Positions 24,226-64,000 of a stretch of DNA of 64,000 nt are shown here, one piece after another. Where the stretch lies: assembly GCA_964247055.1 (NCBI GenBank), contig OZ176056.1, forward strand, positions 3,534,001 through 3,598,000, read 5' to 3'. Each line of letters opens with the position of its first letter. Position 1 is the stretch's first letter. The stretch is from Paragordius varius. Its lineage: Eukaryota; Animalia; Nematomorpha. The position numbers and the translations under genes were made by a program. The notes beneath the pieces are model-generated. The model was not told the origin of the DNA, ran no database searches, and saw only the letters and a program-made list of their open reading frames with translations.

Positions 24226-26790
24226 TATACCATTTCCCAGTCTAAATAAACGTTTTCCCAGTCAATCGAAACATTTTCCCAGAAACGTTTTCCCAGTCAA
24301 TCGAAACATTTTCCCAGGCAATATAAAAACATTTTCCCAATCAATAAAAGCGTTTTCCCAGTCAATAAAAACGGTTTTATTTTTGATGATAAATATCAAA
24401 ACAAGAAAATCAAAACAACTTTTAACCATTATTAGCATAATATTAGGATAATCTATATATTTATAAAAATGGAAAATTCTGGCTTTGTGATCTGGTACAG
24501 GAAAACCGGTAGACCCATTCAAATCCAAACTTCGAAAAAATATAATCATTAATGAATGCCCCGACAATAGCTTCGCCCTTTTTTGAAATAGGCCGCCAGT
24601 TCGGGTCCACCCCGTGTGAAAAACGGTTTTTTTTGAAAGAAGTCCACAAAAATCGTGTCTTTGAGACAATTTTCCGGATAACGTGTTGGACCATTCAATA
24701 AATATGATTTTTATTTAGTTATTTTCGATTGCGCCGAACATAGTCGTCTCGCTTTTTTGATTTAGGCCCGCTTTTTACCCGCTCCCCCTGTAAAATGCCA
24801 TTTTTCAAAAAACAAAGACCACAAAAATATATTTTTAAATCGATATTTTGCCCAAGGTATGAGACCGTAAAAATTCAATATGAATTCCTATTCTGGCAAA
24901 AATTTTAGTCAGGCGTTTCTTTGATGATAGCTGCTGGGTAAGGAGCTACCCGCTAAAAACTGATTCTTCATGTAACTTTGTGATCTGTTTCCGGAAAACC
25001 GGTGAACCCATTCAAATCCAAATATCTATAATCATAAATAAATGTACAGACAATAGCTTCGCCCTTTTCGGAATTAGGTCCCCAGTTCGGGCCCACCCCG
25101 TGTAAAAAATGGGTTAGTCAATTTTCCGGAGAACGTGTTGGACCATTCAATTTCAAATATGATTTTTATTTAGTTATTTTCGATTGCGCCGAACATAGTC
25201 GTCTCGCTTTTTTAATTTAGGCCCGCTTTTTACCCGCTCCCCCCGTAAAATGCCACCTTTTTCAAAAAACAAAGTCCACAAAAATAATTTTTTAAATCGA
25301 TTTTTTGCCCAAGGTATGAGACCGTAAAAATTCAATATGGATTCCACGTATTCCCTGTTGAAAGGCAAAAACTTTAGTCAAGCGTTTTTTTGATGATAGC
25401 TGCTGAGTAAGGAGTTTCTATCATATGTATAAATATTTCTTTAAATCTATTTTTCCCCCAAGTAAACTAAAATGTATGAATGCACCGTTGTAAAATTCCT
25501 ATGAGATCATAGCTATTAAATAATGTTTCGAAATAATCCACATATGTAGATCATTTTATTGTCCCTTTTTTCAACTAACCCCCCCCCCCCCTCCAGAAGT
25601 CTGAAGGACTTCCTCGGGCTGCGCACCAGATTTACGCTAAAATTTATTATAAAAACACAATTACTGAATGACAATTTTTCCAAGTATATTCTAGTGCACA
25701 ATCATTAATGACTTATTCTTTAAATGTTATATTTTTGGAATTTGAGTGAAGATAATATTTTTCATTTTATCGATGGTTCGCATTGATATATGCGGCTAAC
25801 TTAAAAAATCTATAGTTAAGGAATTAATAAAATTTATAAAAATATACCATTTTTATCTCAAAGGTCATTTAACACTTTATATTGGATCTTAAACATAAAT
25901 TTTACGCTAATTTTATAATATTTAACATTTGGTTGGGGGCCTAAGGCGGCCTTCCGAGGATCTTTGTGCGGGCCGCAAAAAATTTGAAAATCCATATGAA
26001 AAAATATGCCCACAAAATCTTAGTAATATTCATATTTATTACGCAATTATTATGAATCTATTAAATTGGTAATGATTAAAAAAAATTGTTATATTGTGTT
26101 TGTATTTTACAGTCTTATTAATCGAAAAATTATGTGAATGCCCGTATATATTTCGAATGGGGAGCCGTGTGCTTTTTGAGTTAAAAATGCGGCCCGCGAA
26201 AGTTGGACACCCTTGTTTTAGTCAAATATTCTTTTTATTAAATAATTTTAAATCAAAAACATTTTTAGCAAAAATTCCGTTTAGATATTTTTTCCGACAG
26301 TATTTTTATTGACAAACCTGACATATTTAAAAACTGTTGTGAAGCGTTCCGCAAATATTAATGCGAACCATCGATAAAATAAAAAATATCTTAACTCAAA
26401 TTCCAATAATAAAACATTTAAAGAATAAGTCATTAATGATGCACTAGAATATACTTGGAAAAATTGTCATTCAATAATTGTGTTTTTAATTTAAAATTAT
26501 CTCCATATATTACGCTGATAATGGTTAAAAGTTGTTTTTACATTCTTATTTTGCTATTTATCATCAAAAATAAAACCGTTTTTATTGACTGGGAAAACGT
26601 TATGATTAGGAAAATGTTTTTATAGACTGGGAAAAGGTTTCGATCGACTGGGAAAACGTTTCGATTGACTGGGAAAATGTTTCGATTGACTGGGAAAACG
26701 TTTCAATTGACTGGGAAAACGTTTCGATTGATTGGGAAAATGTCTCGATTGACTGGGAAAACGTTTATTTGACTGGGAAATGGTATATAT
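24226..26790. mobile_element. Foldback element with arms of 21-bp tandem repeats (GTTTTCCCAGTCAATCGAAAC) carrying nested insertions
   Basis: Left arm tataccatttcccag... (24226-24450) and right arm ...ctgggaaatggtatata (26500-26790) are inverted. Nested inside: element-A fragments 24455-25420, an hAT MITE 25935-26215 and inner inverted arms 25640-25730 / 26410-26500. Confidence 0.8.
24455..25420 (-). mobile_element. Two tandem partial copies of the terminal part of repeat family A
   Basis: Blocks ccccgtgtaaaa, gattgcgccgaacatagtcgtctcgc and tttacccgctcccc occur twice and match 29950-30290 (inverted) and 35490-35950 (direct). Confidence 0.8.
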
Positions 26791-27599
26791 ACCACGAATG
26801 TACTCAATTATCTCGACAACCGTTTTGCGCCAAATATTTAGGTTTTCTATTGGATAAAAACAATGAAATGATAAGATTTCATAAAATTTCATTTGTTTTT
26901 GAAAAGAGAAATTTAATTCATTTTAAATAATGGAAGGACAACCTACGATATGATTAAAAATTAGTGGTAAATATATCGGGAAAACGATTTCTGTTGTATT
27001 TTCATCGGTTTTACAGTAAATATTTAAATTTTTAAGGCACAACGTAAGACAAGGTTTTTAAAACAGTTGTGTACATACAATTGGGTCAATAAATCTTCTT
27101 TTACCTGAACATAGGCTTTATTATATAAAAAAGATGAGTTTAAAAAAATCATAACTGTTTTTAAAATGATATTTGTCTTTCTTTATTTATGTATCAAGGT
27201 GTATCAAGAAAAGGGTGTGGCAGACCCACGTCGCCACTGTCCACAAAAAACGTCCCTTGCTGCCCTTCCATACACCAGTCAATGGTGGTTCAGTGACAGC
27301 CGTCTAGTTGCGTTAGGGGTCGGGTTGACTTCTAGGGATATAATGATAAGTTTTATATAAAGACATGTATAAATTAAATGTAGATATATTTGGCAATTAC
27401 AGATAAATATTTCCTATCAACTATTTCCTAAATTTTTAATGTTTAATAGTTTTAATATTTTATAAATATTCTACTATAGTATAACTAAATGATTTATTAT
27501 ATTGTAACATTGGTCGTTGTCCTTTGAATTAAATATATTATTCGTCTTTACTTATATTGTCATCAGATCCTTTAAGTGCTCATTAAAGTGTGATCTATT

Positions 27600-41811: not shown

Positions 41812-43908
41812 ATGGATACGGTTACCGTCTGCCCCTTCAAAGATCCCGAGTGCGACAATTTTTTCCCATTTTACTGGTATATGTCGATACCTCCGATCCT
41901 AATCTGTATTGGATTAATTGGGAATGGCCTAAGTTTACCCATTTTGTTTCGTTTGAACGCCAGGATAACGGGAAATTATTTTGCGCTACGGAGTGCTTGT
42001 TTATGTAATCTACTACTTAATGTCTTTTTCATGGTTTGGCCATGCCTTTGCACTTATCTGCATTTCAGAAGCAGTTTTAAACACAAACAACTTATTTCTC
42101 AGTTCCCACATATCTTTGGTCCGGGAACGAATGGTAGTGTGTATGATAATTTTAATTTTAACTATAGCCAAACACCTATCGCAACTTCGGTCAATAATAG
42201 ATGTCATTACCGTACTTCTCTAGATCAAACCGTCCTAAAATTTATAAGTCAGCGCGTAAACATAAGTTTGAATGGAAATATGCTTAAAAAAATTATTAGC
42301 CCATCTCTTTTTTCGTACCCGACATCAGGAATTATGAACCTAAATCTAACGTATCATTGGAACTTTTACACAGCCATTTTTAATGCAATCATATTGAATA
42401 CGTTATCACGGACCGCAATAATTTTTATTATACTTTTCTTGTGTGACCGGTATATAGCATTAGTTTTTCCCCATTATTACTTTAGCTATTCAGGCTCGTC
42501 ATCTGTTCTACCCGGATACACTTTTCGCCGTAGGAGCAAAAATGGGCAGAAAAATGAACAAAATAATTACAATATGAATAATAGTAGAGAAAATGGTCAA
42601 ACAATCTTTCCCGATGTTTGCGACAAACTTTTGAAAGCTTTAATGCAATGTGTTTCATCAAAAATAAAATCAATCGAATCCAATACATCATGCATGAAAA
42701 ATGCAATTAGTCCCCATAATCATGATAAATCCATAGAACCAATTGGTAAAAATGTTACTAAAACGACAAATGGAGATGACTCAGCACTAACTGAATCTGC
42801 TGTCGGTATAACTAAAAATACGAAAGAGGCGACAATTTCGATTACAGTGGTTGAAACTAAAAATTTGAAGGCGGGTAAGGCTGTGTTTGTGTCATGTTTG
42901 CGCAATTCTCAAATCATAAAATGTTCCCCGTTTGTCCTGGCACTCATAAGTTGTTGCATGAACATTTACACATATCAATGGTCTGAGATTCGGCCATGTG
43001 TCGATATTTTAGGCAGTTTAAGTTTTTCCAGGGACCTAGAAAGAGTGTTTATTGGTTATACCGTGCATAAAAAAACATGGGATGGATCAGTGTGGTGGAC
43101 CCCGTTATTCATTATGGATATTTTAGAGGAGCTCGTTTTGGCCATTTTGCCGACAATATTTATTGGCTACTTAATTACAAAAATGATGCATCGCATTAAA
43201 TCGTTCAATAGATTACGACGCTCCCGGTCACATCCAAATCAAAATGTATCTCAAGTGGGTAAAAATCGCTCTTGCAAGCCACCATACTATGATGACAACA
43301 ATGTCAAAGATTATAAGAATGATATTATGAAACATAAAGGAATTAATAGGATATCGGTAATACAGAAAAAAGAGCAAACATGTCAACCTTCAATCAAAGC
43401 TTGTTCCTACCCTAGAGCCATACGATTCCCTAATCAAGTGAATAATAATTTGACATCTACAAAGTATTTGGAACCGACTTATGGCAGAAATGCGCTATAC
43501 ATCAAAGATACGTCCAATGCTACCGAAAACATAAAACATGTTTTAAACAAAACTCGCTTTGTATTTAATAAAAAAGCCACATGCCTACTACCCAAAATGA
43601 GATTGGAAACAAAATTTACTTTAGTGATGGGCGTTTATTTTGCATGTATTATACCTAATTCTGTCATGACTATACTCAAAACAACATATGCAAAAGATTG
43701 TCAACTGTCAAACTGCATTTTATATGATTATTTTGAACCTATCCTAAACACGATTGAAATGTTATCGTACACCTTCTTTTTTTATGCTTATTGGTTTTTG
43801 GATCGAAACTTTCGACGTGATTTTAAAATTTTCTATAGGGGTAAGTTGATGAACACAGTGACACGATATTTTGCTGCAATCCGTTCCAAATTTGCTAAAA
43901 TTTATTAA
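41812..43908 (+). CDS. Class A (rhodopsin-like) peptide-type GPCR, FMRFamide/sex-peptide-receptor/Srw-like, single exon, 698 aa
   Basis: Seven hydrophobic segments. TM1 GLIGN, TM3 CDRYIALVFP, TM5 Pro (LAILP), TM6 FACIIP, TM7 FFFYAY followed by helix-8 FRRDF. The ligand cannot be assigned from sequence. Confidence 0.85.
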   Translation: MDTVTVCPFKDPECDNFFPFYWYMSIPPILICIGLIGNGLSLPILFRLNARITGNYFALRSACLCNLLLNVFFMVWPCLCTYLHFRSSFKHKQLISQFPHIFGPGTNGSVYDNFNFNYSQTPIATSVNNRCHYRTSLDQTVLKFISQRVNISLNGNMLKKIISPSLFSYPTSGIMNLNLTYHWNFYTAIFNAIILNTLSRTAIIFIILFLCDRYIALVFPHYYFSYSGSSSVLPGYTFRRRSKNGQKNEQNNYNMNNSRENGQTIFPDVCDKLLKALMQCVSSKIKSIESNTSCMKNAISPHNHDKSIEPIGKNVTKTTNGDDSALTESAVGITKNTKEATISITVVETKNLKAGKAVFVSCLRNSQIIKCSPFVLALISCCMNIYTYQWSEIRPCVDILGSLSFSRDLERVFIGYTVHKKTWDGSVWWTPLFIMDILEELVLAILPTIFIGYLITKMMHRIKSFNRLRRSRSHPNQNVSQVGKNRSCKPPYYDDNNVKDYKNDIMKHKGINRISVIQKKEQTCQPSIKACSYPRAIRFPNQVNNNLTSTKYLEPTYGRNALYIKDTSNATENIKHVLNKTRFVFNKKATCLLPKMRLETKFTLVMGVYFACIIPNSVMTILKTTYAKDCQLSNCILYDYFEPILNTIEMLSYTFFFYAYWFLDRNFRRDFKIFYRGKLMNTVTRYFAAIRSKFAKIY

Positions 43909-47830: not shown

Positions 47831-48554
47831 ACCCAATTTAACATTCTCTAATTAAAATGATAAATTTATTAAAATAGTTTTAGTAAAGTATGCATCATTT
47901 CAAAATATCCATTAAGATAAAATTTTAAATATTGCGTGAAATCTCCTTAAATGGGTTTGGGTTTATTTTGCTTAGAAGTAACCCACTATTCTTTTTGTTA
48001 AAGTCTGGTGATATCCAAAACATTAAAAGCATAAAGGTACATATTTATCAAAAATGCGGGTCTTATTCAAAGCTGCAAAAAAATTATACTTAAATATTTT
48101 ATATTTTTTAACAATTTAAATAATATAGTTTTTTAACCTATTACCGATACTCAAAATGCTAATTGATTATTGGGAATCCCAAAAACTTAAATTTCAAATT
48201 TACTAATGAATAGTTTACATAATATAACATTTCCTTTTTATGCCATAAATTGAACCCGTAATAGAAAATAAAAATCCCCTTATTTTAAAGCTATCCTTGT
48301 TTGTACCGTATGGATGTTTTGTTTAGTTAGTTTACAAGATAATAAGCTTATAATCAAAGTTTTTGAATAACACCACCTAGCTGGTTTTTGAATTGAACTT
48401 TATTGTATGTTTGTTTTCAACATCAAAATTTATACTGTTACCTTTAACCTTGTATATCTTGTAAAAATGAACAAAGTACAGATTTTTACATATATATAAA
48501 ATATATATGATTAGGAGAATATTTTTATTTTCTTAAAGATTACATTTAAAAACC

Positions 48555-51500
48555 ATGCCCAAAATAATATATTTGATGGCACTTAGCATATGCCTATTTC
48601 AATCTGTGACATGTACGCCACGTTTTCGAGACATGGATAAAGATAAACATCAAGATCGTAATTATTATACATATTGTCAAATGTTTGATCCAAAAATTTT
48701 TGCATATTATATTTGAAATTTGCAATTCATATAGCGAAATATTCCAAATACGCACATCCGAACGGTAAGTCAATATATATTGACAAACTATAAATAAATA
48801 TTAGAATTTGAAAACTCTCAAGGTAATTTTACATTAAACTTCTTTTAAAACAATTTAACCTCTTTTTGTGGGGTAAATGTACCCAAAATTATTAAATTGT
48901 CGACTTCGGTTACTTTGTCAATACACTGACGCTAAAAAATGTGTATTTATTTTTTTAATCTTAAATAATTTAAATTAATTGCATGGATAAAAATAAAATC
49001 GAACGATTTTTATCCTATGTAACTGTTTGATAAAAGTGTCCTTATGTGTATAATTCTATACTTGTATATTATTAATATTAATGAAATGTATAATTAAAAA
49101 GTGTTAGATTCATGATATTTTAATTAGGCTTTACAAGTGATTAATAATATTTCCACCTTTGTGGTAATGATCCCATATCTAAAATTCGCAAAATTTGCCC
49201 TTATGTTAATAAATATTTTGGCAAAAGCTAAATGCTTTATAGATTATAAATATATATCATAAACTATATTAAAACTATATTTATTTAAATTCCAATTTTA
49301 TGCATTGTATTTATTAGGCAACAAATGAGTTTATATATAATAAAAAAGTCATAATGGCATTCATAACAAAAAAAAGGTTAAATCACCAAAAATATCCGTA
49401 TGAAAACGTCCAAGCTTATTATAATTTTAATATATTGGATATACTTTGTAGATGTAAAACAAAAATCTACAATTCCTCAACCGAAAAGAATCGAAAGTGA
49501 GTTATTATATTTCAAATATATAATATTAAAAAAAACACTTGATAATTTTTAATATCTATAGTGATTTGACTTATGAAAAATTATAAAATTTATTAAAGTC
49601 TTGAGGTTGAAATGACATTATACTCGAAACTTTTGGACAATGATTATTTTATTTTAAATAATATTATATGGCCCAATTTTATGTAAAATCATAATTCCTT
49701 AATATTTTTCGTAAAATGACTCAAAATCAGAAAATATTGAATTTTAGATTTTATATTATTTGCTCTAAGATTATTACGTAGAAAAGGACATAATAATTTT
49801 TGCTTGTTTTTGGCTACAACTGTTAAATATGAATTGGATGCCCTTAAATTTTCATGGCTTAAAAATAGTGTTCAAGTATTCATAATAAAAATCATTTACA
49901 CACAGGAAATTAGGAGTAATCGCATTTATTCGAAGAAAAAACAAAGCTGTTATATTTAAAAATGATCAATTATTTTTTGAATTAGTTTTTTCACCTTGAA
50001 ATATAAAAAACTATGATATTGGGCCAAATTTAAAATTTGCATTATATGTCCTTTTAGGCGCATTACAAAAAACATCATTTTTAAAATTATAAACAGAAAA
50101 ATAATTTTCACCTCAAAGTTCCGCCTTTTTTTAATAAATTAATGTATGTATTAAAATCCAGTTAAATTTGATTCAAAAGTCATTTTTCATTTTTGCCAAC
50201 AATTTTTTTGGAAAACAAGGACTTTAATTACTGTTAAGCTACTAAAACACCTTTGCATATAATTGAATTTAGATTTGTTCATAGTTAATATGGTATACAA
50301 AAAAAATCTTTTATTATTTTATTGATTACACTTTAAGTTTTACTTAATAATATATACAAATTTATTTATATAGATGATACTCCGGGTAATTAAATTAAAA
50401 TATTTTTACTTTTATATGGTTGTCTTGTTTGCAAATTAAGAAATCCTGTACTTAAACTCTAAAATTTAAACTCAAAAATTCAGACTGTAATTCTATTTAA
50501 ACCAATATTTTTAGTGAGCAACACGGCCTTGGCTGCTGGTATGATTAAAAAAATATTTGTTAAAATTTGAAATTATCCCAATATATTTAAATAGTTGCGG
50601 TTGGAGTTGGCGTAGGTTAAATACTATTCTAACAAAATTATAAAAATAAATTTGTTTAAATATTTCTATCAATATATATATATTATAGGAGTCTTTGGAG
50701 CCGTGGGCATTGCAGGTATTTGTATTTAAGGGCATCAACATTAAAACGCAGTTTTAACAACAGAATAAGAATTTTGGTAAAAAGTTATTTTTACTATTAA
50801 TAATATTAAAAGACCATTTCTAAGCACACGAAATCGTGGATTTTTTCGATATATGCGATATACAAAAACTAATATTATACTTTTTTCAGTAATTTTCGGT
50901 TAATATACACCCCATTGGATAATAGCCTAATAACAGTTATATTAATTAAAGCTTCAAAACATAAAAACCCGTTTATAAGGAGTATCATTTAAGTGTATTA
51001 AAAAATACCATTTTTAAAATTAAAAAAGCTTACCATAAACTATTTATATAATTTAAGCAGACCACAATTAATTTTAATTTTTATGTATTTAAAATATAAA
51101 ATATTTGGGAAAAAATTAAAGGGAAACATTTTTTTTATAGTTAAATGCAAACATATATACCATTTACAGTTCAAATTCACCCTTAAACAATACAAAGACA
51201 CCCTTGAACAATTCGAATTCACCCTTGAACAATTCAAATTCACTCTTGAACAATTCAAATTCACCTTAAAATAAATTATGTGTTTTTTAAGATTAAAAAT
51301 TAGCTATATTTTTTTATTTTTAAAAAAAAGAAATTTTGTTTAAAATTAAAATAATACTGAAAAATTAATAAACTATGCCATAAAAATATATTTAATTTTA
51401 ATGATGAGGAATTGTTCAAGAGTGAATTTAAATTGTTCAAGGGTGATGAATTTGAATTGATCAAGGGTGAATTTGAATTGTAAATGATATATAATGTGTA

Positions 51501-54500
51501 TAGTTCCTCAAGTTACTGGAGCCTTGGCTGGAGGTGCCGCGGCTTCACAAGAGGTCGCCTCTGTCGCTGGACAATTGGTAACAGGCACTCAAGATGCTTC
51601 ATTAGCCCAACCAGGTAGATAAATGTCAAAAACTACATTTTAGGTTCAAATTATGATAAATTTGACGGTTCCCTAATTGTTTTATCGGTTATTTTTAAAT
51701 AACACCTTATCTAACAATTATGTATATATAATATTTAAATTTTAAAATAAAAAGTCATGCTTCAAATTTACTAAGCAAAAATATTAATGATGTAAACAGT
51801 AATTTTTGAATTCAATGACTGGTAATGACAGTGAATTACCGGAATTTAAAAATGGATTTCAGCTCCACTTTTTGCGGTTCCGAATTTCAATCCCAAAACT
51901 CAAAAATCACTAAGATATTATTATTATTATTATTATATTTACAAATAAAATATAAAAGCATACTTAAAATATATTTTTGAAAGGTATATCCGCATCAACT
52001 AGCGAAGTCACCCATCCTGAATGTATGAAATTATTTTCTACATTATTTATTTTCTATATTAATTATATATTTAGTGGTTTCTCCAACCCAGGGGGATTCT
52101 GTTGCAAGTAAAAAAGCTAAAATTAGTTGAAAACGAATCTATCATTACATAGGTCCTGATGTCGAACCTTCAACACCTCAATCTCAAGGTAATATATAAA
52201 TATTTAATAAACTTATATATACAACCATTGGCTGAATTTTAAAGCATATACCATAATCCTAAGTGCTCACAATCACCCGCCATTTGAAATATACTATTTA
52301 CAGTTAAAATTCACCCTTTAACAATTCAAATTTACCCTTGAACAATTCAAATTCACCCTCGAATTCATATATACCCCAAAATAAATTAGGTGTTTTTTAA
52401 GATTAAAAAAATATTTTATTTTATAATATTTTTAAAATATGAAATTCTGTCTAAACTTAATATAATGTTGAAACAATAATAATATGTCGTAAAAATATAA
52501 TTCATATTAATGATGAGTTATTTTATCCCGAAAACACCATAAAATGGTATATATTTGAGGAATATTTTATTAGAGTTAAGGCTGTAAAATGCGAACACAA
52601 TGTAAGAGTTTTTCCAGTTTTCCATATGAGTAGACATAATCAGAAAACTTGTTTAAGAAATATTAAATTTCCTATGATTTTGTTGAGTATATTTAAAAAA
52701 AATTCAGATTTCCAAGAGCCGTATGTTGCACACTCCTTCCTTAAACCATAAGAATCAAGGCACCATTTATATAGTGTAATGTTTAGGGTCAAAAATGTAG
52801 TTTTAGTAAGTGGGATGCAAGCTTTTTGAGTAAAATTTGGAGCAAAACATATTTGGAGATTGTAATAAAAGGTTTAATAATGTTTTTTATGAAATCATAT
52901 ATTTATATTTCTCCATCTTGAGGATCTAGGAATAGAAAAAGATAGCTTGAGAAACTAATAAGTGTAACTATTATTATAGTTAAGTTTACATCTCCCCCTT
53001 ATAGTTGCATAAAAGACAAATAAACTTAAAAAACGGATTTTAGCAGTGGGATGTTTTAACGAATTTATGTATGAATCAAAATTTTACACACTGCAAGCAT
53101 TTTTAAGTAAAATTTGGGGCAAAACATATTTCGAGTTTATTTGTAGTAAAAGTTTTAATAATGTTTTTTATGAATGCATATATTTATATTTCATCACGAG
53201 GATCTAGGAATAGAAAAACATAGATTGAGAAACTAAGTGTAAATATTACTTATAATTAAGTTTAGATCTCCCCTTTATAAATGCCGAAGCTTATTGAAAC
53301 ACAAACTTATAAATGCATATTAATATTATCTATTGATATGCGTTGATAATTTAATAATTTTAGAGCAAATATTGAAAAATAATTTAAAATAATTTTTTAC
53401 ACCATAAAAGGAATTCATTTTTTTATTTTTTGAATATTCAATGGATCTAAATATAAGATTTTAATGTTTGGTTTTTCAATTAAATAAGTTTATGATCTAA
53501 TTTAGGAGAAAAAATGCACTTTTTTCATTCAAAATTATATGTTAACATTGAATAACAATTGTCTTTGTAGACTCAAAACCGGTGGTACTCACCAAAAAAA
53601 ATTTGACGGGCCAAATAAAATATATTTTTTTTCGTGGGCCATGAACCTATAATAAAAATTCTATAGCTATTTGACACATATGCACATATTTATACTCTAA
53701 ATAGCACAATGTGCGGATCGCATCTAAATCCCAACTCGTTTTGCATTATTTAGCTTAAAAAATCAATTTTTTTTGATAACAACATTTATTTTGATATTAA
53801 CCATTATTGACAAATTTGGTTTGGCCTCATGATAGGCCAATCTTAATACGTGGTCCATATAATTATCGGCTAAGCGATTTCGGTTGTGTTCTTGAACTTC
53901 ATTTTTGAATATGCTCTCACACGTGTAAGTTGAGGGAAAAAAGGACAACCTGAGCACGTTTTTTATATTTTCATATTTATTTGGCACATCTTGCCAAAAC
54001 TCTACATATCTTTCTACTCTACGATTCTCCTTGAATATAGCCTCCAAATTGAAATCATTTTTAAAATTTAAGTTCAATGATATGCGCCTGATCAAAATAA
54101 AAATGCTCTAGTTGCCTAATATTGGATATATCTATATGCCATGAATTTTTAATCTCAGCGGTAAATTACATATTATCTTCATGATTCGTTTTAAGTGTGG
54201 GGAAAAATAGGAGTGTTTTATTTATAAAATCTTTTTTATATCAAAAGAATATTAGATTAGCAAATTAGATTATTATCTTCCTTAAAGACTTGTATTAAAA
54301 ATACTAAGTTTACAAGTAATGTCGCAAAGGTAGGCTAATAAAACCCACCATTTGTCACTATTAATTTTCTCGTCAAACTATATGTTATCTTTTATAAATA
54401 ATACTATTTCATGTCTAAAAACAGAAAATTTAGGATCTTATTGTTATTATATTAATAAAATATTAAAACAATACTTAAAATATATTTTTAATAGGTCCAT

Positions 54501-57500
54501 CCGCATCAACTAGCGAAGGCACCCATTCTGAATGTATGAAATTATTTTCTATATAAATTATATTCTTAGTACTTTCTCCAACCCAGGGGGATGCTGTTGC
54601 AAGTAAAAAGGCTAAAATTAGTTGAAAACATATCTATCATTACATAGGTCCTGATGTCGAACCTTCAACACCTCAATCTCAAGGTAACATAAAAATTTAT
54701 GATAAACTTAATTAATAATACATATATTGGCTGAATTTTTAAAGCTTATAATTTGAGCTAGGGTGTCAAACACAAATTTGTCATGCCGATTAAAATATAT
54801 ATGAGCAATATTTTATTACAATTAAGACTGTAAAATGCAAATATAGTTCGTTCGAGTGTGTTTCCATATGAGTGGACGTAATCAGAAAACTTGTTAAAGA
54901 ATACAAATTTACTAAGATTTAGTTGAGTATATTTAAGGAAATTTCGGATTTCCAATTTTTTGCGAGCCGGATGTTGAACACTCCTTCTTTAAACCATCAG
55001 ATATATAACATCAAGGCATAATTATTATATAGTGTAAAGTTTAGGGTCAAAAATGTAGTTTTAGCAGTGGGATGCAAGCTTTTTGAGTAAAATTTGGAGC
55101 AAAGCATATTTCGAGTTTAATTGTAATAAAAGTTTTTAAATTTTTTTAATGAAATCATATATTTATATTTATCCATCTTGAGGATCTAGGAATATAAATA
55201 GTAGGAACTAATTAGTGTAAGTGTAATTATTATTATAGTTAAATTTACATCCCCCATTATAGTTGCATAAAAGACAAATAAACTTAAAAAACTGATTTTA
55301 GCAGTGGGATGTTTTAACAAATGTATGAATCAAAATTTTTACACATTGCAAGCATTTTTAAGTAAAATTTGGGGCAAAACATATTTCGAGTTTATTTATA
55401 GTAAAAGTTTTAATAATGTTTTTTTATGAATGCATATATTTATATTTCACCATCACGAGGATCTAGGAAAGGAAGATAGCTTGAGAAACTAAGTGTAAAT
55501 ATTACTAATTAAGTTTATATCTCCCCTTTATAAATGCCCAAGATTATTGAAACACAAACTTATAAATGCAATTTAATATTATCTATTGATGTGCCTTGAT
55601 AATTTAATAAATTTAGAGCGAATATTGTAAAATAATTGACTGATTAAAATAATTTTTTTACACCATGAAAGTATTTTATTTTTTTTATTTTTTGAATATT
55701 CAATGGATCTAAATATAAGATTTTAATGTTTGGTTTTCAATTCCAATTTAGGAGAAAAATTCACTTTTTCCATTCAAAATTATATGTTAACAATGAATAA
55801 CAATTGAGCTCTCTGTAGACTAAACCCCGGTGGTACTCACCAAAAAAATTTGACGGGCCAAATAAAATATATATATTTTTCGAGGGCCATGAACCTATAA
55901 TGAAAATTCTATAGCTATTTGACACATATGCACATATTTATACTCTAAATAGCACAATGTGCGGATCGCATCTAAATCCCAACTCGTTTTGCACCAATTA
56001 GTTTAAAAAATCAATTTTTTTTGATAACAACATTTATTTTGATATTAACCATTATTGACAAATTTGGTTTGGCCTCATGATAGGCCAATCTTAATACGTG
56101 GTCCATATAATTATCGGCTAAGCGATTTCGGTTGTGTTCTTGAACTTAATTTTTGAATATCACACGGTAAGTTGGGGGAAAAAAGGACAACTTGAGCACG
56201 TTTTTTATATTTTCATATTTATTTGGCACATCTTGCCAAAACTCTACATTTCTTCTCTACGATTCTCCTTGAATATAGCCTCCAAATTGGAATCATTTTT
56301 AAAATTTAAGTTCAATGATATGCGCCTGATCAAAATAAAAATGCTCTAGTTGCCTAATATTGGATATATCCATATGCCATGAATTTTCAACGAGTTATAA
56401 CCTAAATATTTCTTAATTCTTGAAATCTAAATTTCATCTCATTAGATAAAAATGTTAAATGATTCTCTATTATTAAATTAATCTCAGCGTAAATTACATA
56501 TTTTCTTCACGATTCGTTTTAAGTGTTGGAATAAGAGTGTTTTATTTATAAAATCTTTTATATATCAAAAGATTATTAGATTAGCAAATTAGATTATTAT
56601 TTTGCTCCCTTAAAGACTTGTATTAAAAATATTAAGTTTACAAGTTATGTCGCAAAGGTAGGCTATTAAAACCCACCATTTGTCACTATTAATTTTCTCG
56701 TCAAACTATATGTTGTTATCTTTTATAAATAATAGAATTTCATGTCTAAAAAAAAAATTTAAGATAATATTGTTATTATATTTACAAATAAAATATAAAA
56801 CCATACTTAAAATATATTTTTAATAGGTCCATCCGCATCAACTAGCGAAGGCACCCATTCTGAATGTATGAAATTATTTTCTATATAAATTATATTCTTA
56901 GTACTTTCTCCAACCCAGGGGGATGCTGTTGCAAGTAAAAAGGCTAAAATTAGTTGAAAACATATCTATCATTACATAGGTCCTGATGTCGAACCTTCAA
57001 CACCTCAATCTCAAGGTAACATAAAAATATTTGATAAACTTAACTTAATATTACATACATTGGCTTTTTTAATGCTTATAATTTGAACTATAGTGTCGAA
57101 CACAAATTTTTCATGCCGATTAAAATATATATGAGCATTATTTTATTAGAATTAAGACTGTAAAATGCGAACACAATGTAAAAGTTTTTTCCAGTGTGTT
57201 TCCATATGAGTAGACATAATTGGAAAACTTTGAGAAACATTAAATTATCCAAGCTTGTGAGCATAATTTAGGATTTCCAATTTTTTGCGAGCCGCATGTT
57301 GGACACTCCTTCTTAAACCATAAGATTTATAACATCAAAGCATAAGTTATATAGTGTAAAGTTTAGAGTCAAAAGTGTAGTTTTTTAATATGTTTTTTTG
57401 AATGGAGACACTCTTCAGCTTTCATGGTGCGAAAATTTGGGGTCACTTTGCATAAAAGACAAATAAGCTTAAAACATTGATTTTAGCGGTGGTATGTTTT

Positions 57501-60500
57501 AAAGAATTTATATATGAATCAAAATTTTTACACACTGCAAGCTTTTTGAGTAAAATTTAGAGCAAAACATATTTCGAGTTTATTTGTAATAAAAGTTTTA
57601 ATAATGTTTTTTAAACGATGATCTAACCGGTAGATTACATGTTTTGAATAGAATAAAAAGTAGCTAGAAAATTTAAGCCTAACTATTACTATAGTTAAGT
57701 TTACATTTTCCCTTTATAAATGCCGAACCTTATTGAAACACAAATCTGAAATGTATGTTATTTAATATTATCTATTGATGTGTCTTATTAATGATTTTAG
57801 GAGGGAATATGGAAAAATAATTGACTGATTTAAATTTACAGCAGGAAAATCATTTTTCTATTTTTTTTGAATAGTCAATGGATTAAATAAGTTATTATTT
57901 TGTTTTCCAATAAATAAGTTTATCATCCAATTTAGGAGAAAAAATGCACTTTTTTCATTCAAAATTATATGTTAGCATTGTGTAAAAACAATTGAGCTTT
58001 CTGTAGACTCCAAACTGTCAAAACGATTTTATCAAAACTATATTTACTATAATTATTCTTAAACGGAACGATTACGTTCGGAGTTAAAAGGAAAATTTAT
58101 AGGTGGAAGCTAAAGCTGAAAAATACAAAGAATTAGGAATTGCCCCAACCAATTCCTGTATTAATCATCGAAAATTGTTATGTTTAACTACTCTATGATG
58201 TTAATGATTTAAGTTCGAAACCCAACACAGAAAGTTTTGGGGTAATTTTAAAATATATATAATTCTCCAAAATATATCAGCACAGCTGAAATCTCAGTTA
58301 ACCTAATGCAACGTAATCCCTATGTTCGGCTTCCAAAAGTTAAGCCTTTCTAACTTCAAATTTTAGATATAAGGCATTTTTTAATTCAAATTAGTAATGT
58401 AGGCATAAAAGCATTTAGAAAAATTTCTATATATTTGAGATTTTTTGATAATATGCGGGACTTATTCATATTTTTTTAAAATATTTGATACATAGACGCT
58501 CTTTCTCCCTCTATGGAAGATATATCAGAGCCAGGAGGTTTTAAAAATTTTAACCATGTATATTATGTTTTAAAGTAGATATAAGACCAGGTAATACAAA
58601 ATATATTATTATAAAAAAAATATTTTATATACATATGGAGTGATCACTATCAAAGTTTAAAACAGATATGGGAACATATATTGTGGTTTCCCGGTAGAGA
58701 ATGGATATGCAATGCAATATATTCTAATTATCATCACTCGATATAACCTAAATATTTAAAATACGGGTTTATGTTGGAGACATATGTAAAAGTTAATCAA
58801 ACTGTCATAAAATTTTTTGTATATAATTTTTGAGTTTCTAAAAACCTATAAAATACCTATTATGAGACCAAAATAATAGCAGAACACATTATCATTCTTT
58901 GATTTAGAAGAATTTAATTATGCTGTGGATTTATAACTATATCCAATCATTGCTAAACCAAAATGTGTTTCCGAGTTCTGTTTTAACCATATAAAGGCTT
59001 AAGTTAAGACACAAATAAATTTATAAACCATTTATATTAGGATCTGAAGTTAGTCAAGGTAAGTACACTTTTTCTTAATATAATAATCCACATATATTGA
59101 GAAAATGTGGATTTATATATTTTAATATCCTATTAAGCTGGTCCATCGACATCCAACGCAGAAGGTTTAAGAAACCAAGTTTTTGCATCCTCATACTTTA
59201 TAGATACAGTAATTGTTATTTTTTAATATCAAGAATTTTTTTTAATCTATGTGGCATTTTTTTATCCCTTGAAAAGTTGTTTTACAAGCATATAAAAAAT
59301 AACATTTACATATAAATTTAAATGTACTTACATGTCCCTTTTCGGTACACATATATGAGAGATACATTACATTGCAATATGTTCCCCTTCTCGCTACATA
59401 TCCTATTAGAGAAATGGTAACATTGCATATGTGTGTGCCTACTTCGATAAAAAATTAGGTTTGATATATCATTTTTTTATAAAATTAGGTATTAATCGGT
59501 ATGTTATGTGTTCTGCATACTTTAGGTGATATAGTGTTTTCAAAAAAACTCAGCAAAATCAAATCAATATTTAAATTTGTATAATACAAGTTTTATTACG
59601 CACATAAGCGATTTATATGTTAATTTCAAAAATATTTTTTTATAGTCTTATATGATATCAGTTATGATTTTCTGAAATATTTTTTAATTAATTGATAAAA
59701 ACTTAATTTTTTATAAAAAAATATATATAAAACCTAAAAAATTATTTAATATCACCTAAAATTAGTTAAACTAAGAAATGTCGACGAAAAATGGTAAAAT
59801 AATATCATTTATAATTATTTTACAAGTGGTAATTTATTTAAGCAAATATTTTTGACAATTTTTTTGGTGTGCTCATAATACTTAAGAAAATGAATGTGCT
59901 GAATATATCAAAAATTTGAGTTAAATCAATTCTTCCACATTGAAATGGCATCTTGCCTGACTTTTTTTGATCTCTGGAGTCTGGGTTATTAATGTGTTCC
60001 CATAGTTTGAATCTAATGTAGATGGCAAACTTACATCTATATTAAATTGATAAAAACTTAATATTTTATACAAAAAATTATATATCAAACTTATAAATTA
60101 ATAATCAAAGTATGCAGAACACATAACATACTGATTAATACCTAATTTTATAAAAAAATGATATATCAAACCTAATTTTTTATCGAAGTAGGCACAACAC
60201 ATATGCAATGTTACCATTTCTCTAATAGGATATGTAGCGAGAAGGGGAACATATTGCAATGTAATGTATCTCTCATATATGGGTACCGAAAAGGGACTTG
60301 TAAGTACATTTAAATATATATGTAAATGTTATTTTTTATATGCTTGTAAAACAACTTTTCAAGGGATAAAAAAATGCCACACAGATTAAAAAAAAAATTC
60401 TTGATATTAAAAAATAACAATTACTGTAATTAAATGGATTAAAAATGGTCATAACTAAATATAAGTTTTAAACTGTCAAATGCATAACATGTACTTTTAA

Positions 60501-62918
60501 AAGAGGAATATAGATGCGACCAAAAAGTGATAAACAGCTGGTTTTAATTCAAATATGGAATAAAAGAATAAGATTATCTTCAAAAGCTCTTATAAAAAAT
60601 ATTGATAAAAGTCTTTTTTGGGCTAAATCTTAACAGGATATTATTTCTAAAGTAACCATTAAAAAAACTTAAACTGTTGATCTGCCTTTTTTATATATAT
60701 GTTTGACCATTTTTTCAAACATAGAAAAATGGTGTATAGTAATTTTCGATATAAATTTAATATGATATAATGATTTTTGAATTAACAATTTTTTATATTA
60801 ATTTATACATTACCAATTAATATAAAAGCTGATACCGTTAATCCAATCGAAGGCACAGAAACACAAAATTTTCAAGGAATCCGAAGTATGTTTCTTAAGA
60901 TTTTTTTGAATTGGATATGGATAACTTTAAATTATAACTTGCTTAGGTGAATTGGGGACAACAGGTTGATAAACGATTTTATTTATAAATTAAAAAACTT
61001 ATATATATTATATATATATACAGTCAGAAGCTTGGCTAGATATCGTAATTTTAATTTAAATTTCCATTCAAAAACCATGATATTATTATATATAATATTA
61101 TTCAGAGGGAAGAACTCTGAGTTTTGGTATATTTCAATATCTTTAATATCTTGATAGCAGAGATTGGAAACGCTTTATTTATTTTTTCAAAATGCGGCCC
61201 ACAAAGTTATTTGTGTTGAGCAGTCCTGAATTATTTATATAAAATAAAATAAGGTTCTACATTGTATATTAAAGCTTACAAAATTCTTTTTTTTTTGGAA
61301 CCGTGTTAGAACCGCAACTCCATTTTCAATTTTAACTGAAACTATTATATTTGAATATTTGGGGTCAAAAAACTCCCCATATATCGTTTCCAATTTTATG
61401 CTATTAACAATAAAATTTTTTAATAAATGTATTTATTTATACGTATTCATTTTTATTTAGGAGCCCAAATACTTCATGAATGTAAATTTTAGAGTTTTAA
61501 CTTTTAATGCTTCCTTTTTCTTTCTATAGCTGCCGAAAATATTGAAACATGTAAATATTATTAACTTTTATATGGCAATATTTGTATTTAATAAATTATT
61601 TTAGCAATTCACAGCATTCGTGGAGGTATTTAGCCTTTTTAATCAGTATATTATATTTATAGTCCTTAACACAAGTATAATATATAAAATCAATCGTTAT
61701 TAATCATTTTTTTAATTAAATTTAAATTAAATATGATAGGAGGCACATCATTACAAATCGCTGCAAGTTAAATGATATTTAATTAACAAAAAAATAATTT
61801 TAACTATTTTCTAGGAGCTAGAGGTATATTTATAATGTAAAGCAAAAACTCTCATAGGCTTTATACCCAGTAGAATTAGAAAATTAAACTTTAGATTTGA
61901 AAAGCGATATCCAGGAAGCGATGAATCATTTACAAGGTGGTTGCTAAATTTAAAAACTATTTTTAAATGACATTTTTAAATTTGTTTTAATTTCAATTTG
62001 TGTTTTACGATGAAAAAAACAATAGATTTACAAAATGAAGTCGAAAGTATGGTCATTTTTTATGAAATTTAACAAAATTATTTTTCAAAAAGGAATGGAA
62101 TTTCGCTTGAATGGTATTCCATTTTATTAACCTCTTTTATATATGCAAATATCTGTAAATTTTATAATTAGCATCGTTTAGATAAGAGCCATATTAATAG
62201 TTTAAAAGTTTTTTACAGGTTAATAGCAAAAAAATTTTTTTGCTTCTGGACTAAATTATATTTGTTTTGCATAATTTAAGCAGGATTCACAAATTTATTG
62301 ATCAATAGAATTAATCCGTTATTAAAACTGTTCAAAGGCAGTGATACTTTAATAATAAAACAACTTAAGACTTGCATTAATATTGATATAACAATTTCAA
62401 ACGATAAAATATCAAATGTAAATTTACTATATTATACAGTATCTGTTTATTTTTATATAATATAGATTTAAGTAGAGTTGATATAAGTAATATTTTCCAT
62501 CATCGCAATATAATTTGATTATTGACTATCAAATTTTATTTATATATATAATTTCTACATAGTGTCAAACCAAGAGTTGCAAGGTATTTTGGGCTTTTAC
62601 TAAAAGATATTAAAATAAAATAAATTGAATTTTTAACATTGTAAGCTCTTTATTTCATTTGAAACACACTTAAAAAAGGGATCGGGATTAAGCATGAATG
62701 TATTACAGGTCTAAGGGGTCATATGAAGATGTTTAATTACATAATCGCAATGGTTTACCTTTTTATATTACGACTCATGAAAAAAATTACAGTTTAAACA
62801 CTTTATAAATGATGTCATAAAAAAGGCATTCTACCTTATATAGATTAAAATGTCATTTTTTTATTGAAATTTATAGGAGCTCTTTCGGATGCCATCCTAG
62901 ATACCGAAGTGGAAACTG
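48555..62918 (+). CDS. Putative secreted or surface protein encoded by a micro-exon gene (signal-peptide exon plus ~31 symmetric phase-1 exons), at least ~362 aa, no recognised homology
   Basis: Exons: 48555-48657 (MPKIIYLMALSICLFQSVTC-TPRFRDMDKDKHQD), 48735-48764, 48805-48822, 49452-49496, 50374-50385, 50515-50538, 50595-50615, 50689-50715, 51504-51614, 51984-52022, 52075-52107, 52153-52188, 54495-54533, 54570-54602, 54648-54683, 56827-56865, 56902-56934, 56980-57015, 58496-58537, 58579-58590, 59041-59058, 60829-60885, 60947-60964, 61024-61044, 61461-61481, 61530-61550, 61605-61625, 61740-61766, 61815-61823, 61895-61936, 62563-62583, 62877-62918. Each is AG..GT-bounded, GC-richer than its flanks, a multiple of 3 nt and stop-free in phase 1. 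Possible extra exons 58286-58312 and 61663-61674. Candidate terminal exon 62968-62984 (DRVEY*) or from 63003. Confidence 0.75.
51155..51492. mobile_element. MITE with 21-bp tandem-repeat arms, ending ~11 nt before a micro-exon acceptor
   Basis: TATATACCATTTACAG..(CACCCTTGAACAATTCAAATT)n at left; inverted copies ending ..GTAAATGATATATA at right. Confidence 0.8.
53750..54140 (-). pseudogene. hAT (SPIN/GTF2IRD2-like) transposase C-terminal dimerisation-domain relic
   Basis: ORF 53763..54095: EFWQDVPNKYENIKNVLRLSFFPSTYTCESIF..RNRLADNYMDHVLRLA matches the hAT C-terminal FW..KYP.L...STY.CE..FS..R.RL.D..L...LRL pattern. Confidence 0.8.
55980..56380 (-). pseudogene. Second copy of the hAT transposase relic, created by the tandem duplication and further deleted
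   Basis: Near-identical to 53750-54140 with small deletions (gctctcacacgtgtaag versus cacacggtaag). Confidence 0.8.
59207..60426. mobile_element. Young Tc1/mariner-type non-autonomous element with ~320-bp near-perfect TIRs and TA flanks
   Basis: TA-CAGTAATTGTTATTTTTTAATATCAAG... and ...CTTGATATTAAAAAATAACAATTACTG-TA. Arms ~59207-59523 and ~60107-60426 differ at only a handful of positions by eye. Confidence 0.9.
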
Positions 62919-64000
62919 GTACATAAAATTAATATTTTTGCATTCTAGAAAAAATTTTTTGTTTAGATAGGGTTGAATATTAAATATTGGATTGCTTTAT
63001 AGCAATGCTTATAAGAAAAGGAAAAAATAACCGTGTTTCATATTGAATGGTGAACTGATCATTCTACAAATACAATTATACATATATTTAAGTGTGTCAA
63101 ATTTAGGGGGTACCTCCTGAATAATAAGACTTAATTTTTTTAGAATCAGGCTTTGAGAATCAGTAATAATTGGAGAAGCACCATATAAGACAATAAATGA
63201 GCAAAAATCAGATGCTTTCACTATTTGGGCTATAATTTTTTATCTAAAATAAACGCTGATATACAGTAAAATTTGAAATTATACGGATAAAATATAAAAT
63301 TTTCGAAAAAACAACCATACTCTTTAACTTATATTTTTTAATTATAACTCATGTTTCAAATTGCAAAGTATGAAACAGAGATGTATATCGGTAACACAAT
63401 CATATTTATAATTAACAGTGAATATAGGTTTAAGAAAGTGTCTTTTGACAAAAAATATTTGTCTTTATATTTTCCGTTTGTCCATATAATTTTTTGTATT
63501 AACACTTCATATATGATTAAAATTAACAGCGTTTTAATTTATGCTCAAAATATTGAATATAGCCATATTTACTTGATTTTTACCATTTTCATATATGGCC
63601 TTTGAGACAACAGATGCCCCTATATTTGACATATTATATATAATATTATTATTAATTTTGTGAATTTTCATTATTCGCACCATTTTTAAGTAAATATTTT
63701 AAAGTATATCTTAACTAAAAATAAAATAATTTTGCGCAGAGAAGCCTTATCATTTTTATGTCGTTAGGGGAAATGTTTTTGTGCGGTTTTTTTTCAAAAA
63801 GAAGTTTGGCGGGGTGTAATAGAATTTTTTACAACATTAATGCGATCTTATTGTACTGTCCGTTTTGCTATAAGACTGCATTCTGTTGCACTGAGTATTA
63901 TAATTAAATATTAATCTATTATTTGTTATAATACGAGATTTTTGAAACCTATTGATCTCAACGAAATAGAAGTCTATACCTAAAAATTTAAGCCTTTCAA

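Follow-up and report, generated by a model that had tools for sequence, protein, structure and literature searches.

The stretch of DNA analysed here (the window) comprises 64,000 nucleotides of the Paragordius varius genome (GenBank assembly GCA_964247055.1, contig OZ176056.1, positions 3,534,001 to 3,598,000), and all positions below refer to its numbering. Its plus strand carries, between 48555 and 63120, a chain of very small candidate exons, which we regard, with a probability of approx. 0.75, as a real gene that is specific to its lineage, has about 29 exons and codes for a mucin-like protein, either secreted or attached to the surface and probably O-glycosylated. In the gene model the 29 exons are distributed over 14.6 kb, of which about 7% is coding, from the ATG at 48555 to the stop codon at 63118-63120, and the predicted product of the joined exons is about 327 amino acids long. 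The lengths of all 27 internal exons are multiples of three (3n; 9-111 nt, median 27 nt), while the introns are all of the GT-AG type, each interrupts a codon after the first base (phase 1), and their sizes fall into a short class of 36-79 nt and a long one of 114-2306 nt. The exons are free of stop codons in one frame only, the one with two leading bases. The splice dinucleotides of the modelled exons are all intact; the splice sites as such are weak and rich in A and T, and a length below 30 nt is common among the exons.

The first exon (103 nt, 48555-48657) contains the ATG, a signal-peptide-like segment of 20 residues, a short basic segment and a GC island (48578-48636). The ATG begins a 46-codon open reading frame, and the GTAATT donor after base 103 of the exon (48657) gives phase 1, which agrees with what had been proposed for this exon from the sequence alone. 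Downstream of it lie a 30-nt exon of high confidence (48735-48764; score 13.1, AG and GTAAGT borders, open in phase 1, neutral in the leave-one-out frame test) and a 12-nt exon of medium confidence (50374-50385; score 11.1, phase-1 margin +2.5). A trio of 24-, 21- and 27-nt exons (50515-50538, 50595-50615 and 50689-50715; scores 18.2, 15.6 and 19.9, all phase 1), separated by introns of 56 and 73 nt, codes for most of a Gly/Ala/Val hydrophobic stretch. The largest exon, of 111 nt with 36 full codons (51504-51614; score 37.0), was identified both by a composition island and by the frame test.

Beyond the repeated cassette described below, the same two kinds of evidence gave high confidence to exons of 42 nt (58496-58537; score 14.3), 27 nt (59138-59164; 16.7), 27 nt (61740-61766; 13.2) and 42 nt (62877-62918; 17.2). 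The exons of 57 nt (60829-60885; 10.4) and 18 nt (60947-60964; 16.6) are also of high confidence by the frame test, and that of 21 nt (61605-61625; 14.7) by its splice sites and composition, the frame test being neutral in this case. Medium confidence was assigned to exons of 15 nt (58576-58590; score 8.9, margin +3.7), 18 nt (59041-59058; 11.4, donor GTAAGT, margin +4.3) and 9 nt (61815-61823; 9.5, margin +2.1) and to two of 21 nt (61461-61481 and 61530-61550; scores 8.1 and 7.0, margins +1.8 and +6.8). The proposed terminal coding segment (63107-63120) contributes four codons followed by TGA; it coincides with a GC island (63106-63119) which begins at AG and finishes at the stop, and an AATAAA motif lies 73 nt after 63119. 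The 3' end of the model at this TGA is tentative. The 1664-nt intron of the gene harbours an inverted-repeat (TIR/foldback) element (59236-60395), whose arms, I1 and I2, are approx. 290 nt long, 98-99% complementary and separated by a loop of 583 nt.

Between the 111-nt exon and the distal exons a cassette of three exons (39, 33 and 36 nt; together 108 nt, 36 amino acids) is present in three copies, which derive from a tandem duplication of 2.3-2.5 kb at the DNA level. The exons of copy 1 lie at 51984-52022, 52075-52107 and 52153-52188 (introns of 52 and 45 nt), those of copy 2 at 54495-54533, 54570-54602 and 54648-54683 (introns of 36 and 45 nt), and those of copy 3, identical to copy 2 in the exons, at 56827-56865, 56902-56934 and 56980-57015. 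The duplicated region extends from 51940 to 58015 on the plus strand, with unit starts about 2495 and 2332 nt apart, a truncated third unit and the repeat families D1 and D3-D14. Copy 2 differs from copy 1 by seven exonic substitutions and no indels. Since six of these replace an amino acid and one is silent, purifying selection on the residues is not apparent from the comparison of the cassette copies. The exon lengths 39/33/36 remained unchanged across the copies, while the first cassette intron went from 52 to 36 nt. The locus displays growth under way, by triplication of a three-exon cassette with its exon lengths conserved.

The exon structure was assessed by procedures blind to exon length. 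GC islands within 48500-63000 were picked by composition alone, and the minus strand of the same interval and the rest of the window were used as controls. On the plus strand 20 of the 65 islands were bounded by AG and GT, and 19 of these 20 were 3n. The corresponding numbers were 4 of 65 on the minus strand (two 3n and one of each other length class) and 45 of 514, 17 of them 3n, in the rest of the window, so that 19 of the 49 bounded islands in the pooled controls were 3n (Fisher test against the controls: p = 1e-5 for 3n, p = 2e-6 for AG..GT boundedness). When candidates were scored by a splice-site weight matrix (PWM) together with composition, 21 of 21 at a score of at least 12 and 26 of 27 at a score of at least 10 were 3n, an enrichment that was absent in the controls. 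The joined unique exons show clear codon periodicity (chi2 = 100, p = 2e-19), with 41% G at codon position 1 and GC1/GC2/GC3 values of 0.60/0.53/0.31, and they contain no stops in the chosen frame vs 8 and 11 in the remaining frames. In the leave-one-out frame test 13 of 15 unique exons were classed as phase 1 (P = 3e-5). With the confident exons masked, additional 3n, phase-1-open candidates were 4-5 times denser in the introns of the gene than in the controls. Four sequence tests, largely independent of one another, support the predicted combination of phase-1 micro-exons, a signal peptide and an orphan protein rich in S/T/P/Q/E/G/A.

These results bear on a sequence-only reading of the locus, which had described AG- and GT-bounded GC islands of 3n length sharing one open frame and had suggested a null count of such islands; the description holds, and the islands are far rarer in control DNA. 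Its list of about 31 exons needed correction: each listed length does exist as a segment between AG and GT, but about five of the tiny exons are doubtful. The 18-nt (48805-48822), 45-nt (49452-49496), 21-nt (61024-61044) and 42-nt (61895-61936) exons were dropped for poor splice or composition scores and/or the wrong periodicity, and the 12-nt exon from 58579, which scored 2.5, was replaced by the 15-nt version given above. A 21-nt candidate (62563-62583) is uncertain, for its splice sites are good (splice score 12.0) but the periodicity prefers another frame (margin -4.5). The strong 27-nt exon at 59138-59164 and the terminal stop exon had been missed. The joined protein retains the open frame and the composition ascribed to it, at about 327 instead of about 362 residues. 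Overall, the earlier interpretation as a locus resembling the micro-exon genes (MEGs) of schistosomes is partly supported.

Since the exons are uniformly 1-1 symmetric, each exon or cassette could be duplicated, lost or skipped with the frame kept, and alternative splicing, which such symmetry permits, could putatively use it in the same way. The strongest competing view goes further and assumes a MEG-like variation system, in which skipping of the symmetric micro-exons yields a secreted protein in a ladder of isoforms, located at the body interface or at that between parasite and host. The internal exons, all 3n and phase 1-1, would make any skip frame-neutral, the start of the protein is signal-peptide-like, the weak, AT-rich splice sites and the many exons below 30 nt fit as well, and the six amino-acid-changing differences out of seven between the cassettes point to fast evolution, as described for schistosome MEGs (PMC4350168). 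However, growth by duplicating exons downstream of a phase-1 intron that follows the signal peptide would produce the frame symmetry as well (PMC8001218), and constitutively important structural genes show it too. We consider a variation system of this kind possible, but clearly the minority view.

The mucin-like reading is based on the predicted protein. Judged by rules, its start resembles a signal peptide (Lys in the n-region, a hydrophobic core of 12 residues, and small residues at -3 and -1, Val and Cys), and such a peptide, about 20 residues long, would be cleaved off. Next would come a short basic segment and then a Gly/Ala/Val stretch of 20-40 residues, encoded by three or four micro-exons. 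The tail of about 250 residues, presumably disordered, is predicted to be acidic (pI about 4.2), free of Cys and rich in Ser, Thr, Pro, Gln and Glu. The mature protein has no Cys, two Tyr and four lysines (1.3%), and combines an S+T+P content of 32%, a percentage below that of classical mucin domains, with a 36-residue repeat present three times. On our reading, the product is secreted or attached to the surface, probably O-glycosylated and mucin-like, and would belong to the body surface or the extracellular matrix.

A rather unlikely alternative is a type I membrane protein, in which the Gly/Ala/Val stretch is a transmembrane helix with about 30 residues outside. If the stretch spans the membrane after a cleaved signal peptide, the acidic Ser/Thr/Pro-rich tail would be cytoplasmic, e.g. 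a disordered scaffold or a phospho-regulated tail, instead of mucin-like. The hydrophobic stretch (residues about 48-85) peaks on the Kyte-Doolittle scale at residues 48-63, its 19-residue mean reaches 2.3 at 53-55 downstream of the signal-peptide-like start, and GxxxG-like spacing occurs in it. Its summed biological-scale value, approx. +0.9, is only borderline for a membrane segment because of the five glycines, the positive charges N-terminal of the stretch are on the wrong side for this topology, and the tail, by its composition and tandem 36-residue repeats, resembles extracellular mucin-type sequence.

A homologue search had also been suggested, and its outcome agrees with the orphan status: phmmer with the 36-residue translation of an exon as query gave no matches among 1.84 billion representatives, and the Atlas and Pfam searches returned no match. 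The RNA-labelled runs of the species are small and contain almost none of the sampled words, those of the 111-nt exon included; in favour of the gene, a run of a related organism contains 0.78 of the sampled words of the 111-nt exon vs 0.33 for the whole 9.9 kb. The scarcity of words in the species' own runs, the failure of the phmmer query to find a homologue and the neutrality-like divergence of the cassette residues would all suit a gene that is dead or close to it, its chain of exons being a relic that has lost its expression. This is improbable. About 327 codons are free of stops over 29 pieces while the other frames hold 8 and 11, the splice dinucleotides are all intact, and exon lengths were held while the adjoining introns gained or lost bases; moreover, GC1 and GC2 lie well above GC3 and the intron background, and neutral decay in a genome of 26% GC would erase this gap. 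The view that the AG-(3n)-GT islands arose by chance in non-coding, AT-rich DNA and were merely selected by eye, a concern since the earlier reader admitted preferring symmetric lengths and a few listed tiny exons score at background level, is refuted by the length-blind tests (3n in 19/20 and 21/21 vs about one third to 40% in the controls) and by periodicity and frame tests that do not depend on selection by eye.

A phase-1 micro-exon architecture behind a signal peptide appears to be undescribed in hairworms so far. ORF tracks do not show micro-exon genes, and standard gene finders usually overlook them; among the secreted molecules of flukes and aphids, those of greatest importance at the interface with the host are encoded by such genes. 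For hairworms, genomes with unusually low numbers of annotated genes have been reported (10,320 for Gordionus montsenyensis); an un-annotated class of micro-exon secreted proteins would enlarge this repertoire and would offer candidate molecules for the surface of the worm, its cuticle or host manipulation. It is a doubtful, speculative step from here to the proposal that hairworms independently evolved a MEG-like gene class and, during the parasitic phase, vary their secreted or surface proteins by skipping exons and duplicating cassettes. If true, the architecture would have originated independently for a third time among parasites, blood flukes and gall- or sap-feeding aphids being the two earlier cases, and parasite lineages would be seen once more to converge on frame-neutral micro-exons as a means of building disordered secreted proteins and changing their size.

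The architecture had been said to define schistosome MEGs, which is too narrow: it is found in the aphid bicycle genes (PMC9168663) and in tropoelastin (10.1101/2024.12.03.626628) as well. The likeness to MEGs comprises a signal peptide, predicted here, ahead of coding sequence that consists almost wholly of very small symmetric exons, a mixture of short and kb-sized introns, orphan, fast-evolving and little-structured products that gene finders overlook, and a family grown by duplication. The hairworm gene is larger, with about 29 exons and about 327 residues vs the 10-20 exons and mostly small proteins of typical MEGs (summarised in PMC4350168 and bioRxiv 10.1101/2023.06.21.545858), and it belongs to another lineage, MEGs being said to "appear to be restricted to platyhelminths" (PMC4350168). 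Sequence similarity is lacking for the 36-residue exon query. The MEG concept of schistosomes centres on exon skipping and on expression in glands or epithelia, features that the present gene might share. Since the 36-residue exon query matched no protein, the gene is, as far as its sequence indicates, an analogue of MEGs and not a member.

In the bicycle and megacycle genes of aphids the internal exons start at codon position 2, i.e. the introns are in phase 1 (Korgaonkar et al. 2021; Stern & Han 2022, PMC9168663). As here, many micro-exons lie behind a signal peptide (a predicted one in the present gene), nearly all internal exons begin at codon position 2, protein length grows with exon number and sequence similarity fails to detect the genes. 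They are, however, Hemiptera-specific and expressed in the salivary gland, and their proteins carry paired Cys-Tyr-Cys (CYC) motifs, whereas the mature protein here has no Cys and two Tyr. Tropoelastin (ELN), whose exon borders are entirely phase 1:1 (10.1101/2024.12.03.626628), starts with a signal peptide, as is predicted here, is coding in about 6% of the gene (about 7% here), and shares small exons, short introns in replicated regions, Gly/Val/Ala-rich hydrophobic sequence and exons that can be gained or lost cassette-wise. It occurs in vertebrates only and alternates hydrophobic and Lys-Ala cross-linking domains throughout, whereas the present protein has a single hydrophobic stretch, 1.3% Lys, no KA/KP motifs and a long acidic Ser/Thr/Pro-rich tail. 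The class 1-1 modules (Patthy; PMC8001218) are folded domains of 40-100 or more residues (EGF, Ig, FN3), unlike the 3-37-residue pieces of a disordered chain seen here. An excess of phase-1 introns downstream of signal peptides is general (PMC8001218), and with these modules the gene has in common the phase-1 intron after the (here predicted) signal peptide, symmetric 1-1 exons that multiply by intronic recombination, and junction codons that are mostly G-first, as AG/G proto-splice sites predict.

GC-rich islands were located from base composition only, with no regard to splice sites, length or frame. On the plus strand between positions 48,500 and 63,000, the region of the micro-exon gene (48555-63120, plus strand), 20 of the 65 islands were bounded by AG and GT, and in 19 of these 20 the length was a multiple of three. 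The other 48 kb of the window served as control together with the opposite strand; there 26 of 257 islands were bounded on the plus strand (8 multiples of three) and 19 of 257 on the minus strand (9 multiples of three). A reading of the gene region on its minus strand was rejected on the same composition scan, as only 4 of its 65 islands were bounded and 2 of them were multiples of three. Compared with the pooled controls, the gene-strand islands differed both in the excess of multiples of three (Fisher p = 1.1e-5) and in boundedness (p = 1.9e-6). Such a null count had been proposed as a check in the sequence-only reading, and its outcome upheld the observation. In a second scan, candidates of any length between 6 and 150 nt were scored by composition together with a rough splice-site matrix. 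Lengths on the gene strand were multiples of three in 21 of 21 candidates at a score of at least 12 and in 26 of 27 at a score of at least 10, and no enrichment of this kind was found in the control partitions. The confident exons had served to train the matrix, so that the second scan depends in part on the first; the first is independent.

The confident internal exons numbered 21, namely 15 unique exons and six copies belonging to the cassette, a trio of 39-, 33- and 36-nt exons. Only one frame was stop-free in all the confident exons; in it the introns are in phase 1, so that each exon begins on the second base of a codon. When 18 non-redundant exons were joined (730 nt), this frame held no stop, versus 8 and 11 in the alternative phases, both rejected on account of these stops. 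The joined exons showed a clear three-base periodicity (41% G at codon position 1; chi2 = 100, p = 2e-19) and their GC content fell across the three codon positions (0.60, 0.53 and 0.31), the third position having drifted toward the genome background. In a leave-one-out procedure a position-specific model was trained on all exons but one and the preferred frame of the omitted exon was scored; phase 1 was preferred by 13 of the 15 unique internal exons (P = 3e-5). Periodicity and frame preference are traits of sequence that is translated, and no selection for them had been made, either by the earlier reader or in the present analysis. The claim of a single stop-free frame made of symmetric phase-1 exons was borne out.

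The ATG at 48555 lies in the context AAAACCATG and opens an ORF of 46 codons. Among its first 20 residues the third is Lys, 12 form a hydrophobic core, and the end is polar, Val occupying -3 and Cys -1; the exon 1 donor (GTAATT after base 103) leaves phase 1, matching what the chain needs. With the confident exons masked, extra candidates with acceptable splice sites, a length divisible by three and an open phase 1 were counted; their density was 0.70-0.84 per kb in the introns of the gene versus 0.14-0.19 in the controls, and thus about 8 further tiny exons are expected to be real. Six of consistent periodicity were entered in the model, at 50374, 58576, 59041, 61461, 61530 and 61815. The stop codon was missing from the original model; we propose a terminal coding segment at 63107-63120, a GC island with AG at its start and TGA exactly at its end (63118-63120), followed by AATAAA 73 nt downstream. 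The gene model then comprises 29 exons and about 327 codons at a coding density of 6.7%, and its introns (48658-63106) fall into two size groups, 36-79 nt (n=14) and 114-2306 nt (n=14), with none in the 21-29-nt range. A 55-nt exon at 58103-58157 was rejected, as its length is not a multiple of three and it has phase-1 stops.

Every exon length listed in the sequence-only reading, which had picked about 31 exons by eye, does occur as a segment between AG and GT. Its picks at 49452 (45 nt), 48805 (18 nt), 61024 (21 nt), 61895 (42 nt) and 58579 (12 nt) are doubtful, since their splice and composition scores did not exceed the background; those at 61024 and 61895 had the wrong periodicity as well. 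The pick at 62563 has good splice sites and the wrong periodicity, and a strong 27-nt exon at 59138-59164 had been overlooked. Since all these lengths are multiples of three, the corrections leave the frame unaffected. The original observation is confirmed with minor corrections, and it is highly probable that the gene is real.

The cassette is present in a tandem array (copy 1 at 51984-52188, copy 2 at 54495-54683, copy 3 at 56827-57015) whose units follow one another, start to start, at 2495 and 2332 nt. The exons of copies 2 and 3 are identical. Between copies 1 and 2 there are seven substitutions, six of them amino acid changing and one silent, and no exon indel; the intron between the first two cassette exons measures 52 nt in copy 1 versus 36 nt in copy 2, and the identity of the flanks is just 81-85%. 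Thus length and frame were kept and the residues were not. This is the pattern expected of a disordered spacer or of a fast-evolving interface protein, though seven changes carry no statistical weight. A tblastn search within the window detected no paralogue of the joined protein outside the gene.

Several elements were seen in the introns. One is a near-perfect inverted repeat, whose arms at 59236-59523 and 60107-60395 measure about 290 nt each, are 98-99% complementary and enclose a loop of 583 nt; it resembles a TIR or foldback transposon of recent insertion. A 21-nt unit resembling TTCACCCTTGAACAATTCAAA is repeated in tandem at 51155-51470 and 52268-52384, in two introns 1.1 kb apart; the first copy is followed about 130 nt on by its own reverse complement (51405-51470), forming a MITE or foldback-like element. 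In the duplicated intron a 110-aa ORF on the minus strand (53766-54095, second copy near 56010-56340) gave a sub-threshold match to PF05699, the hAT transposase C-terminal dimerisation domain (E = 0.01), and is probably a hAT remnant brought along by the tandem duplication. Beside it, the islands at 53705 and 55953, multiples of three that are part of this duplicated intron, were rejected because of phase-1 stops.

After the signal-peptide-like start the predicted product continues with a segment of about 25 residues in which Lys, Arg and Asp are frequent. Next comes a Gly/Ala/Val stretch, encoded by three exons of 24, 21 and 27 nt together with the beginning of the 111-nt exon (51504-51614, the largest internal one). 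The C-terminal part of about 250 residues lacks Cys and Trp, has 32% S+T+P and a pI of about 4.2, and holds three copies of the 36-residue unit encoded by the cassette. The product is probably a secreted or surface-bound, disordered and O-glycosylated chain. A less likely rival would be a type I membrane protein whose tail lies in the cytoplasm, for which the Gly/Ala/Val stretch would have to span the membrane. The Kyte-Doolittle 19-residue mean of the stretch reaches 2.3, but its summed biological-scale value of about +0.9 is borderline for insertion.

The 36 residues of the 111-nt exon gave no match in a phmmer search against 1.84 billion representatives; therefore an assembled transcript or annotation of the gene or of a close relative is absent from that library. 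In the protein Atlas, exon 1 and the 36-aa exon found sub-threshold look-alikes only, and Pfam gave no match. Sequencing runs that include the region contained 0.69-0.78 of the sampled words, and since these are mostly intronic, the runs appear to be DNA. In the small RNA-labelled runs of the species about 0.00 of the sampled words were found, those of the 111-nt exon included. The run of a related organism contained 0.33 of the words of a 9.9-kb region versus 0.78 of those of the 111-nt exon, which suggests, from a tiny sample (7 of 9 words), stronger conservation of this exon than of the sequence around it.

The GC content of the window is 22-34% throughout and long ORFs are nearly absent. 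The published genome of Gordionus montsenyensis has 26.93% GC and 64% repeats with DNA transposons dominant, and the GC and repeat content of the window fits these values, as consistency and nothing more. The two largest neighbouring ORFs are a 311-aa ORF with a metazoan-type cyclin-dependent kinase inhibitor domain (19852-20784, minus strand; PF02234, E = 1.2e-10) and an intron-less 698-aa GPCR-like ORF (41812-43908, plus strand) with several hydrophobic segments and a 'DRY'-like CDRYIALV motif. Among 5.8 billion proteins neither had a homologue, the PF02234 domain of the former aside, and both were absent from the contig collection; the latter had no Pfam match. A minisatellite at 26609-26892 has a 21-nt unit that would translate on either strand into a repeat of 7 residues (TFSQSIE.. 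/ GKTFRLT..).

Schistosome micro-exon genes (MEGs) are defined by exons that are small and symmetric, by a signal peptide and by isoforms made through exon skipping (PMC4350168; bioRxiv 10.1101/2023.06.21.545858) and 'appear to be restricted to platyhelminths' (PMC4350168). They resemble the hairworm gene in structure, but homology was not found; the MEG-like reading is structurally apt, while membership fails on the phmmer result for the 36-aa exon. [quoted passage not shown] Tropoelastin is entirely phase 1:1 and about 6% coding, and its Gly/Val-rich hydrophobic domains alternate with Lys cross-linking domains (10.1101/2024.12.03.626628), the latter being absent from the hairworm product. 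No paper was found in the literature joining micro-exon genes with hairworms. Signal-peptide boundaries are in general enriched in phase-1 introns, and recombination within introns multiplies exons of the symmetric 1-1 type (PMC8001218), thus the architecture can originate repeatedly without common descent. On its sequence features the gene would be best filed as a convergent variant of the 'micro-exon secreted-protein gene' kind, new for a phylum without described cases, and by analogy with the MEGs combinatorial splicing and a role at the host interface are its candidate functions.
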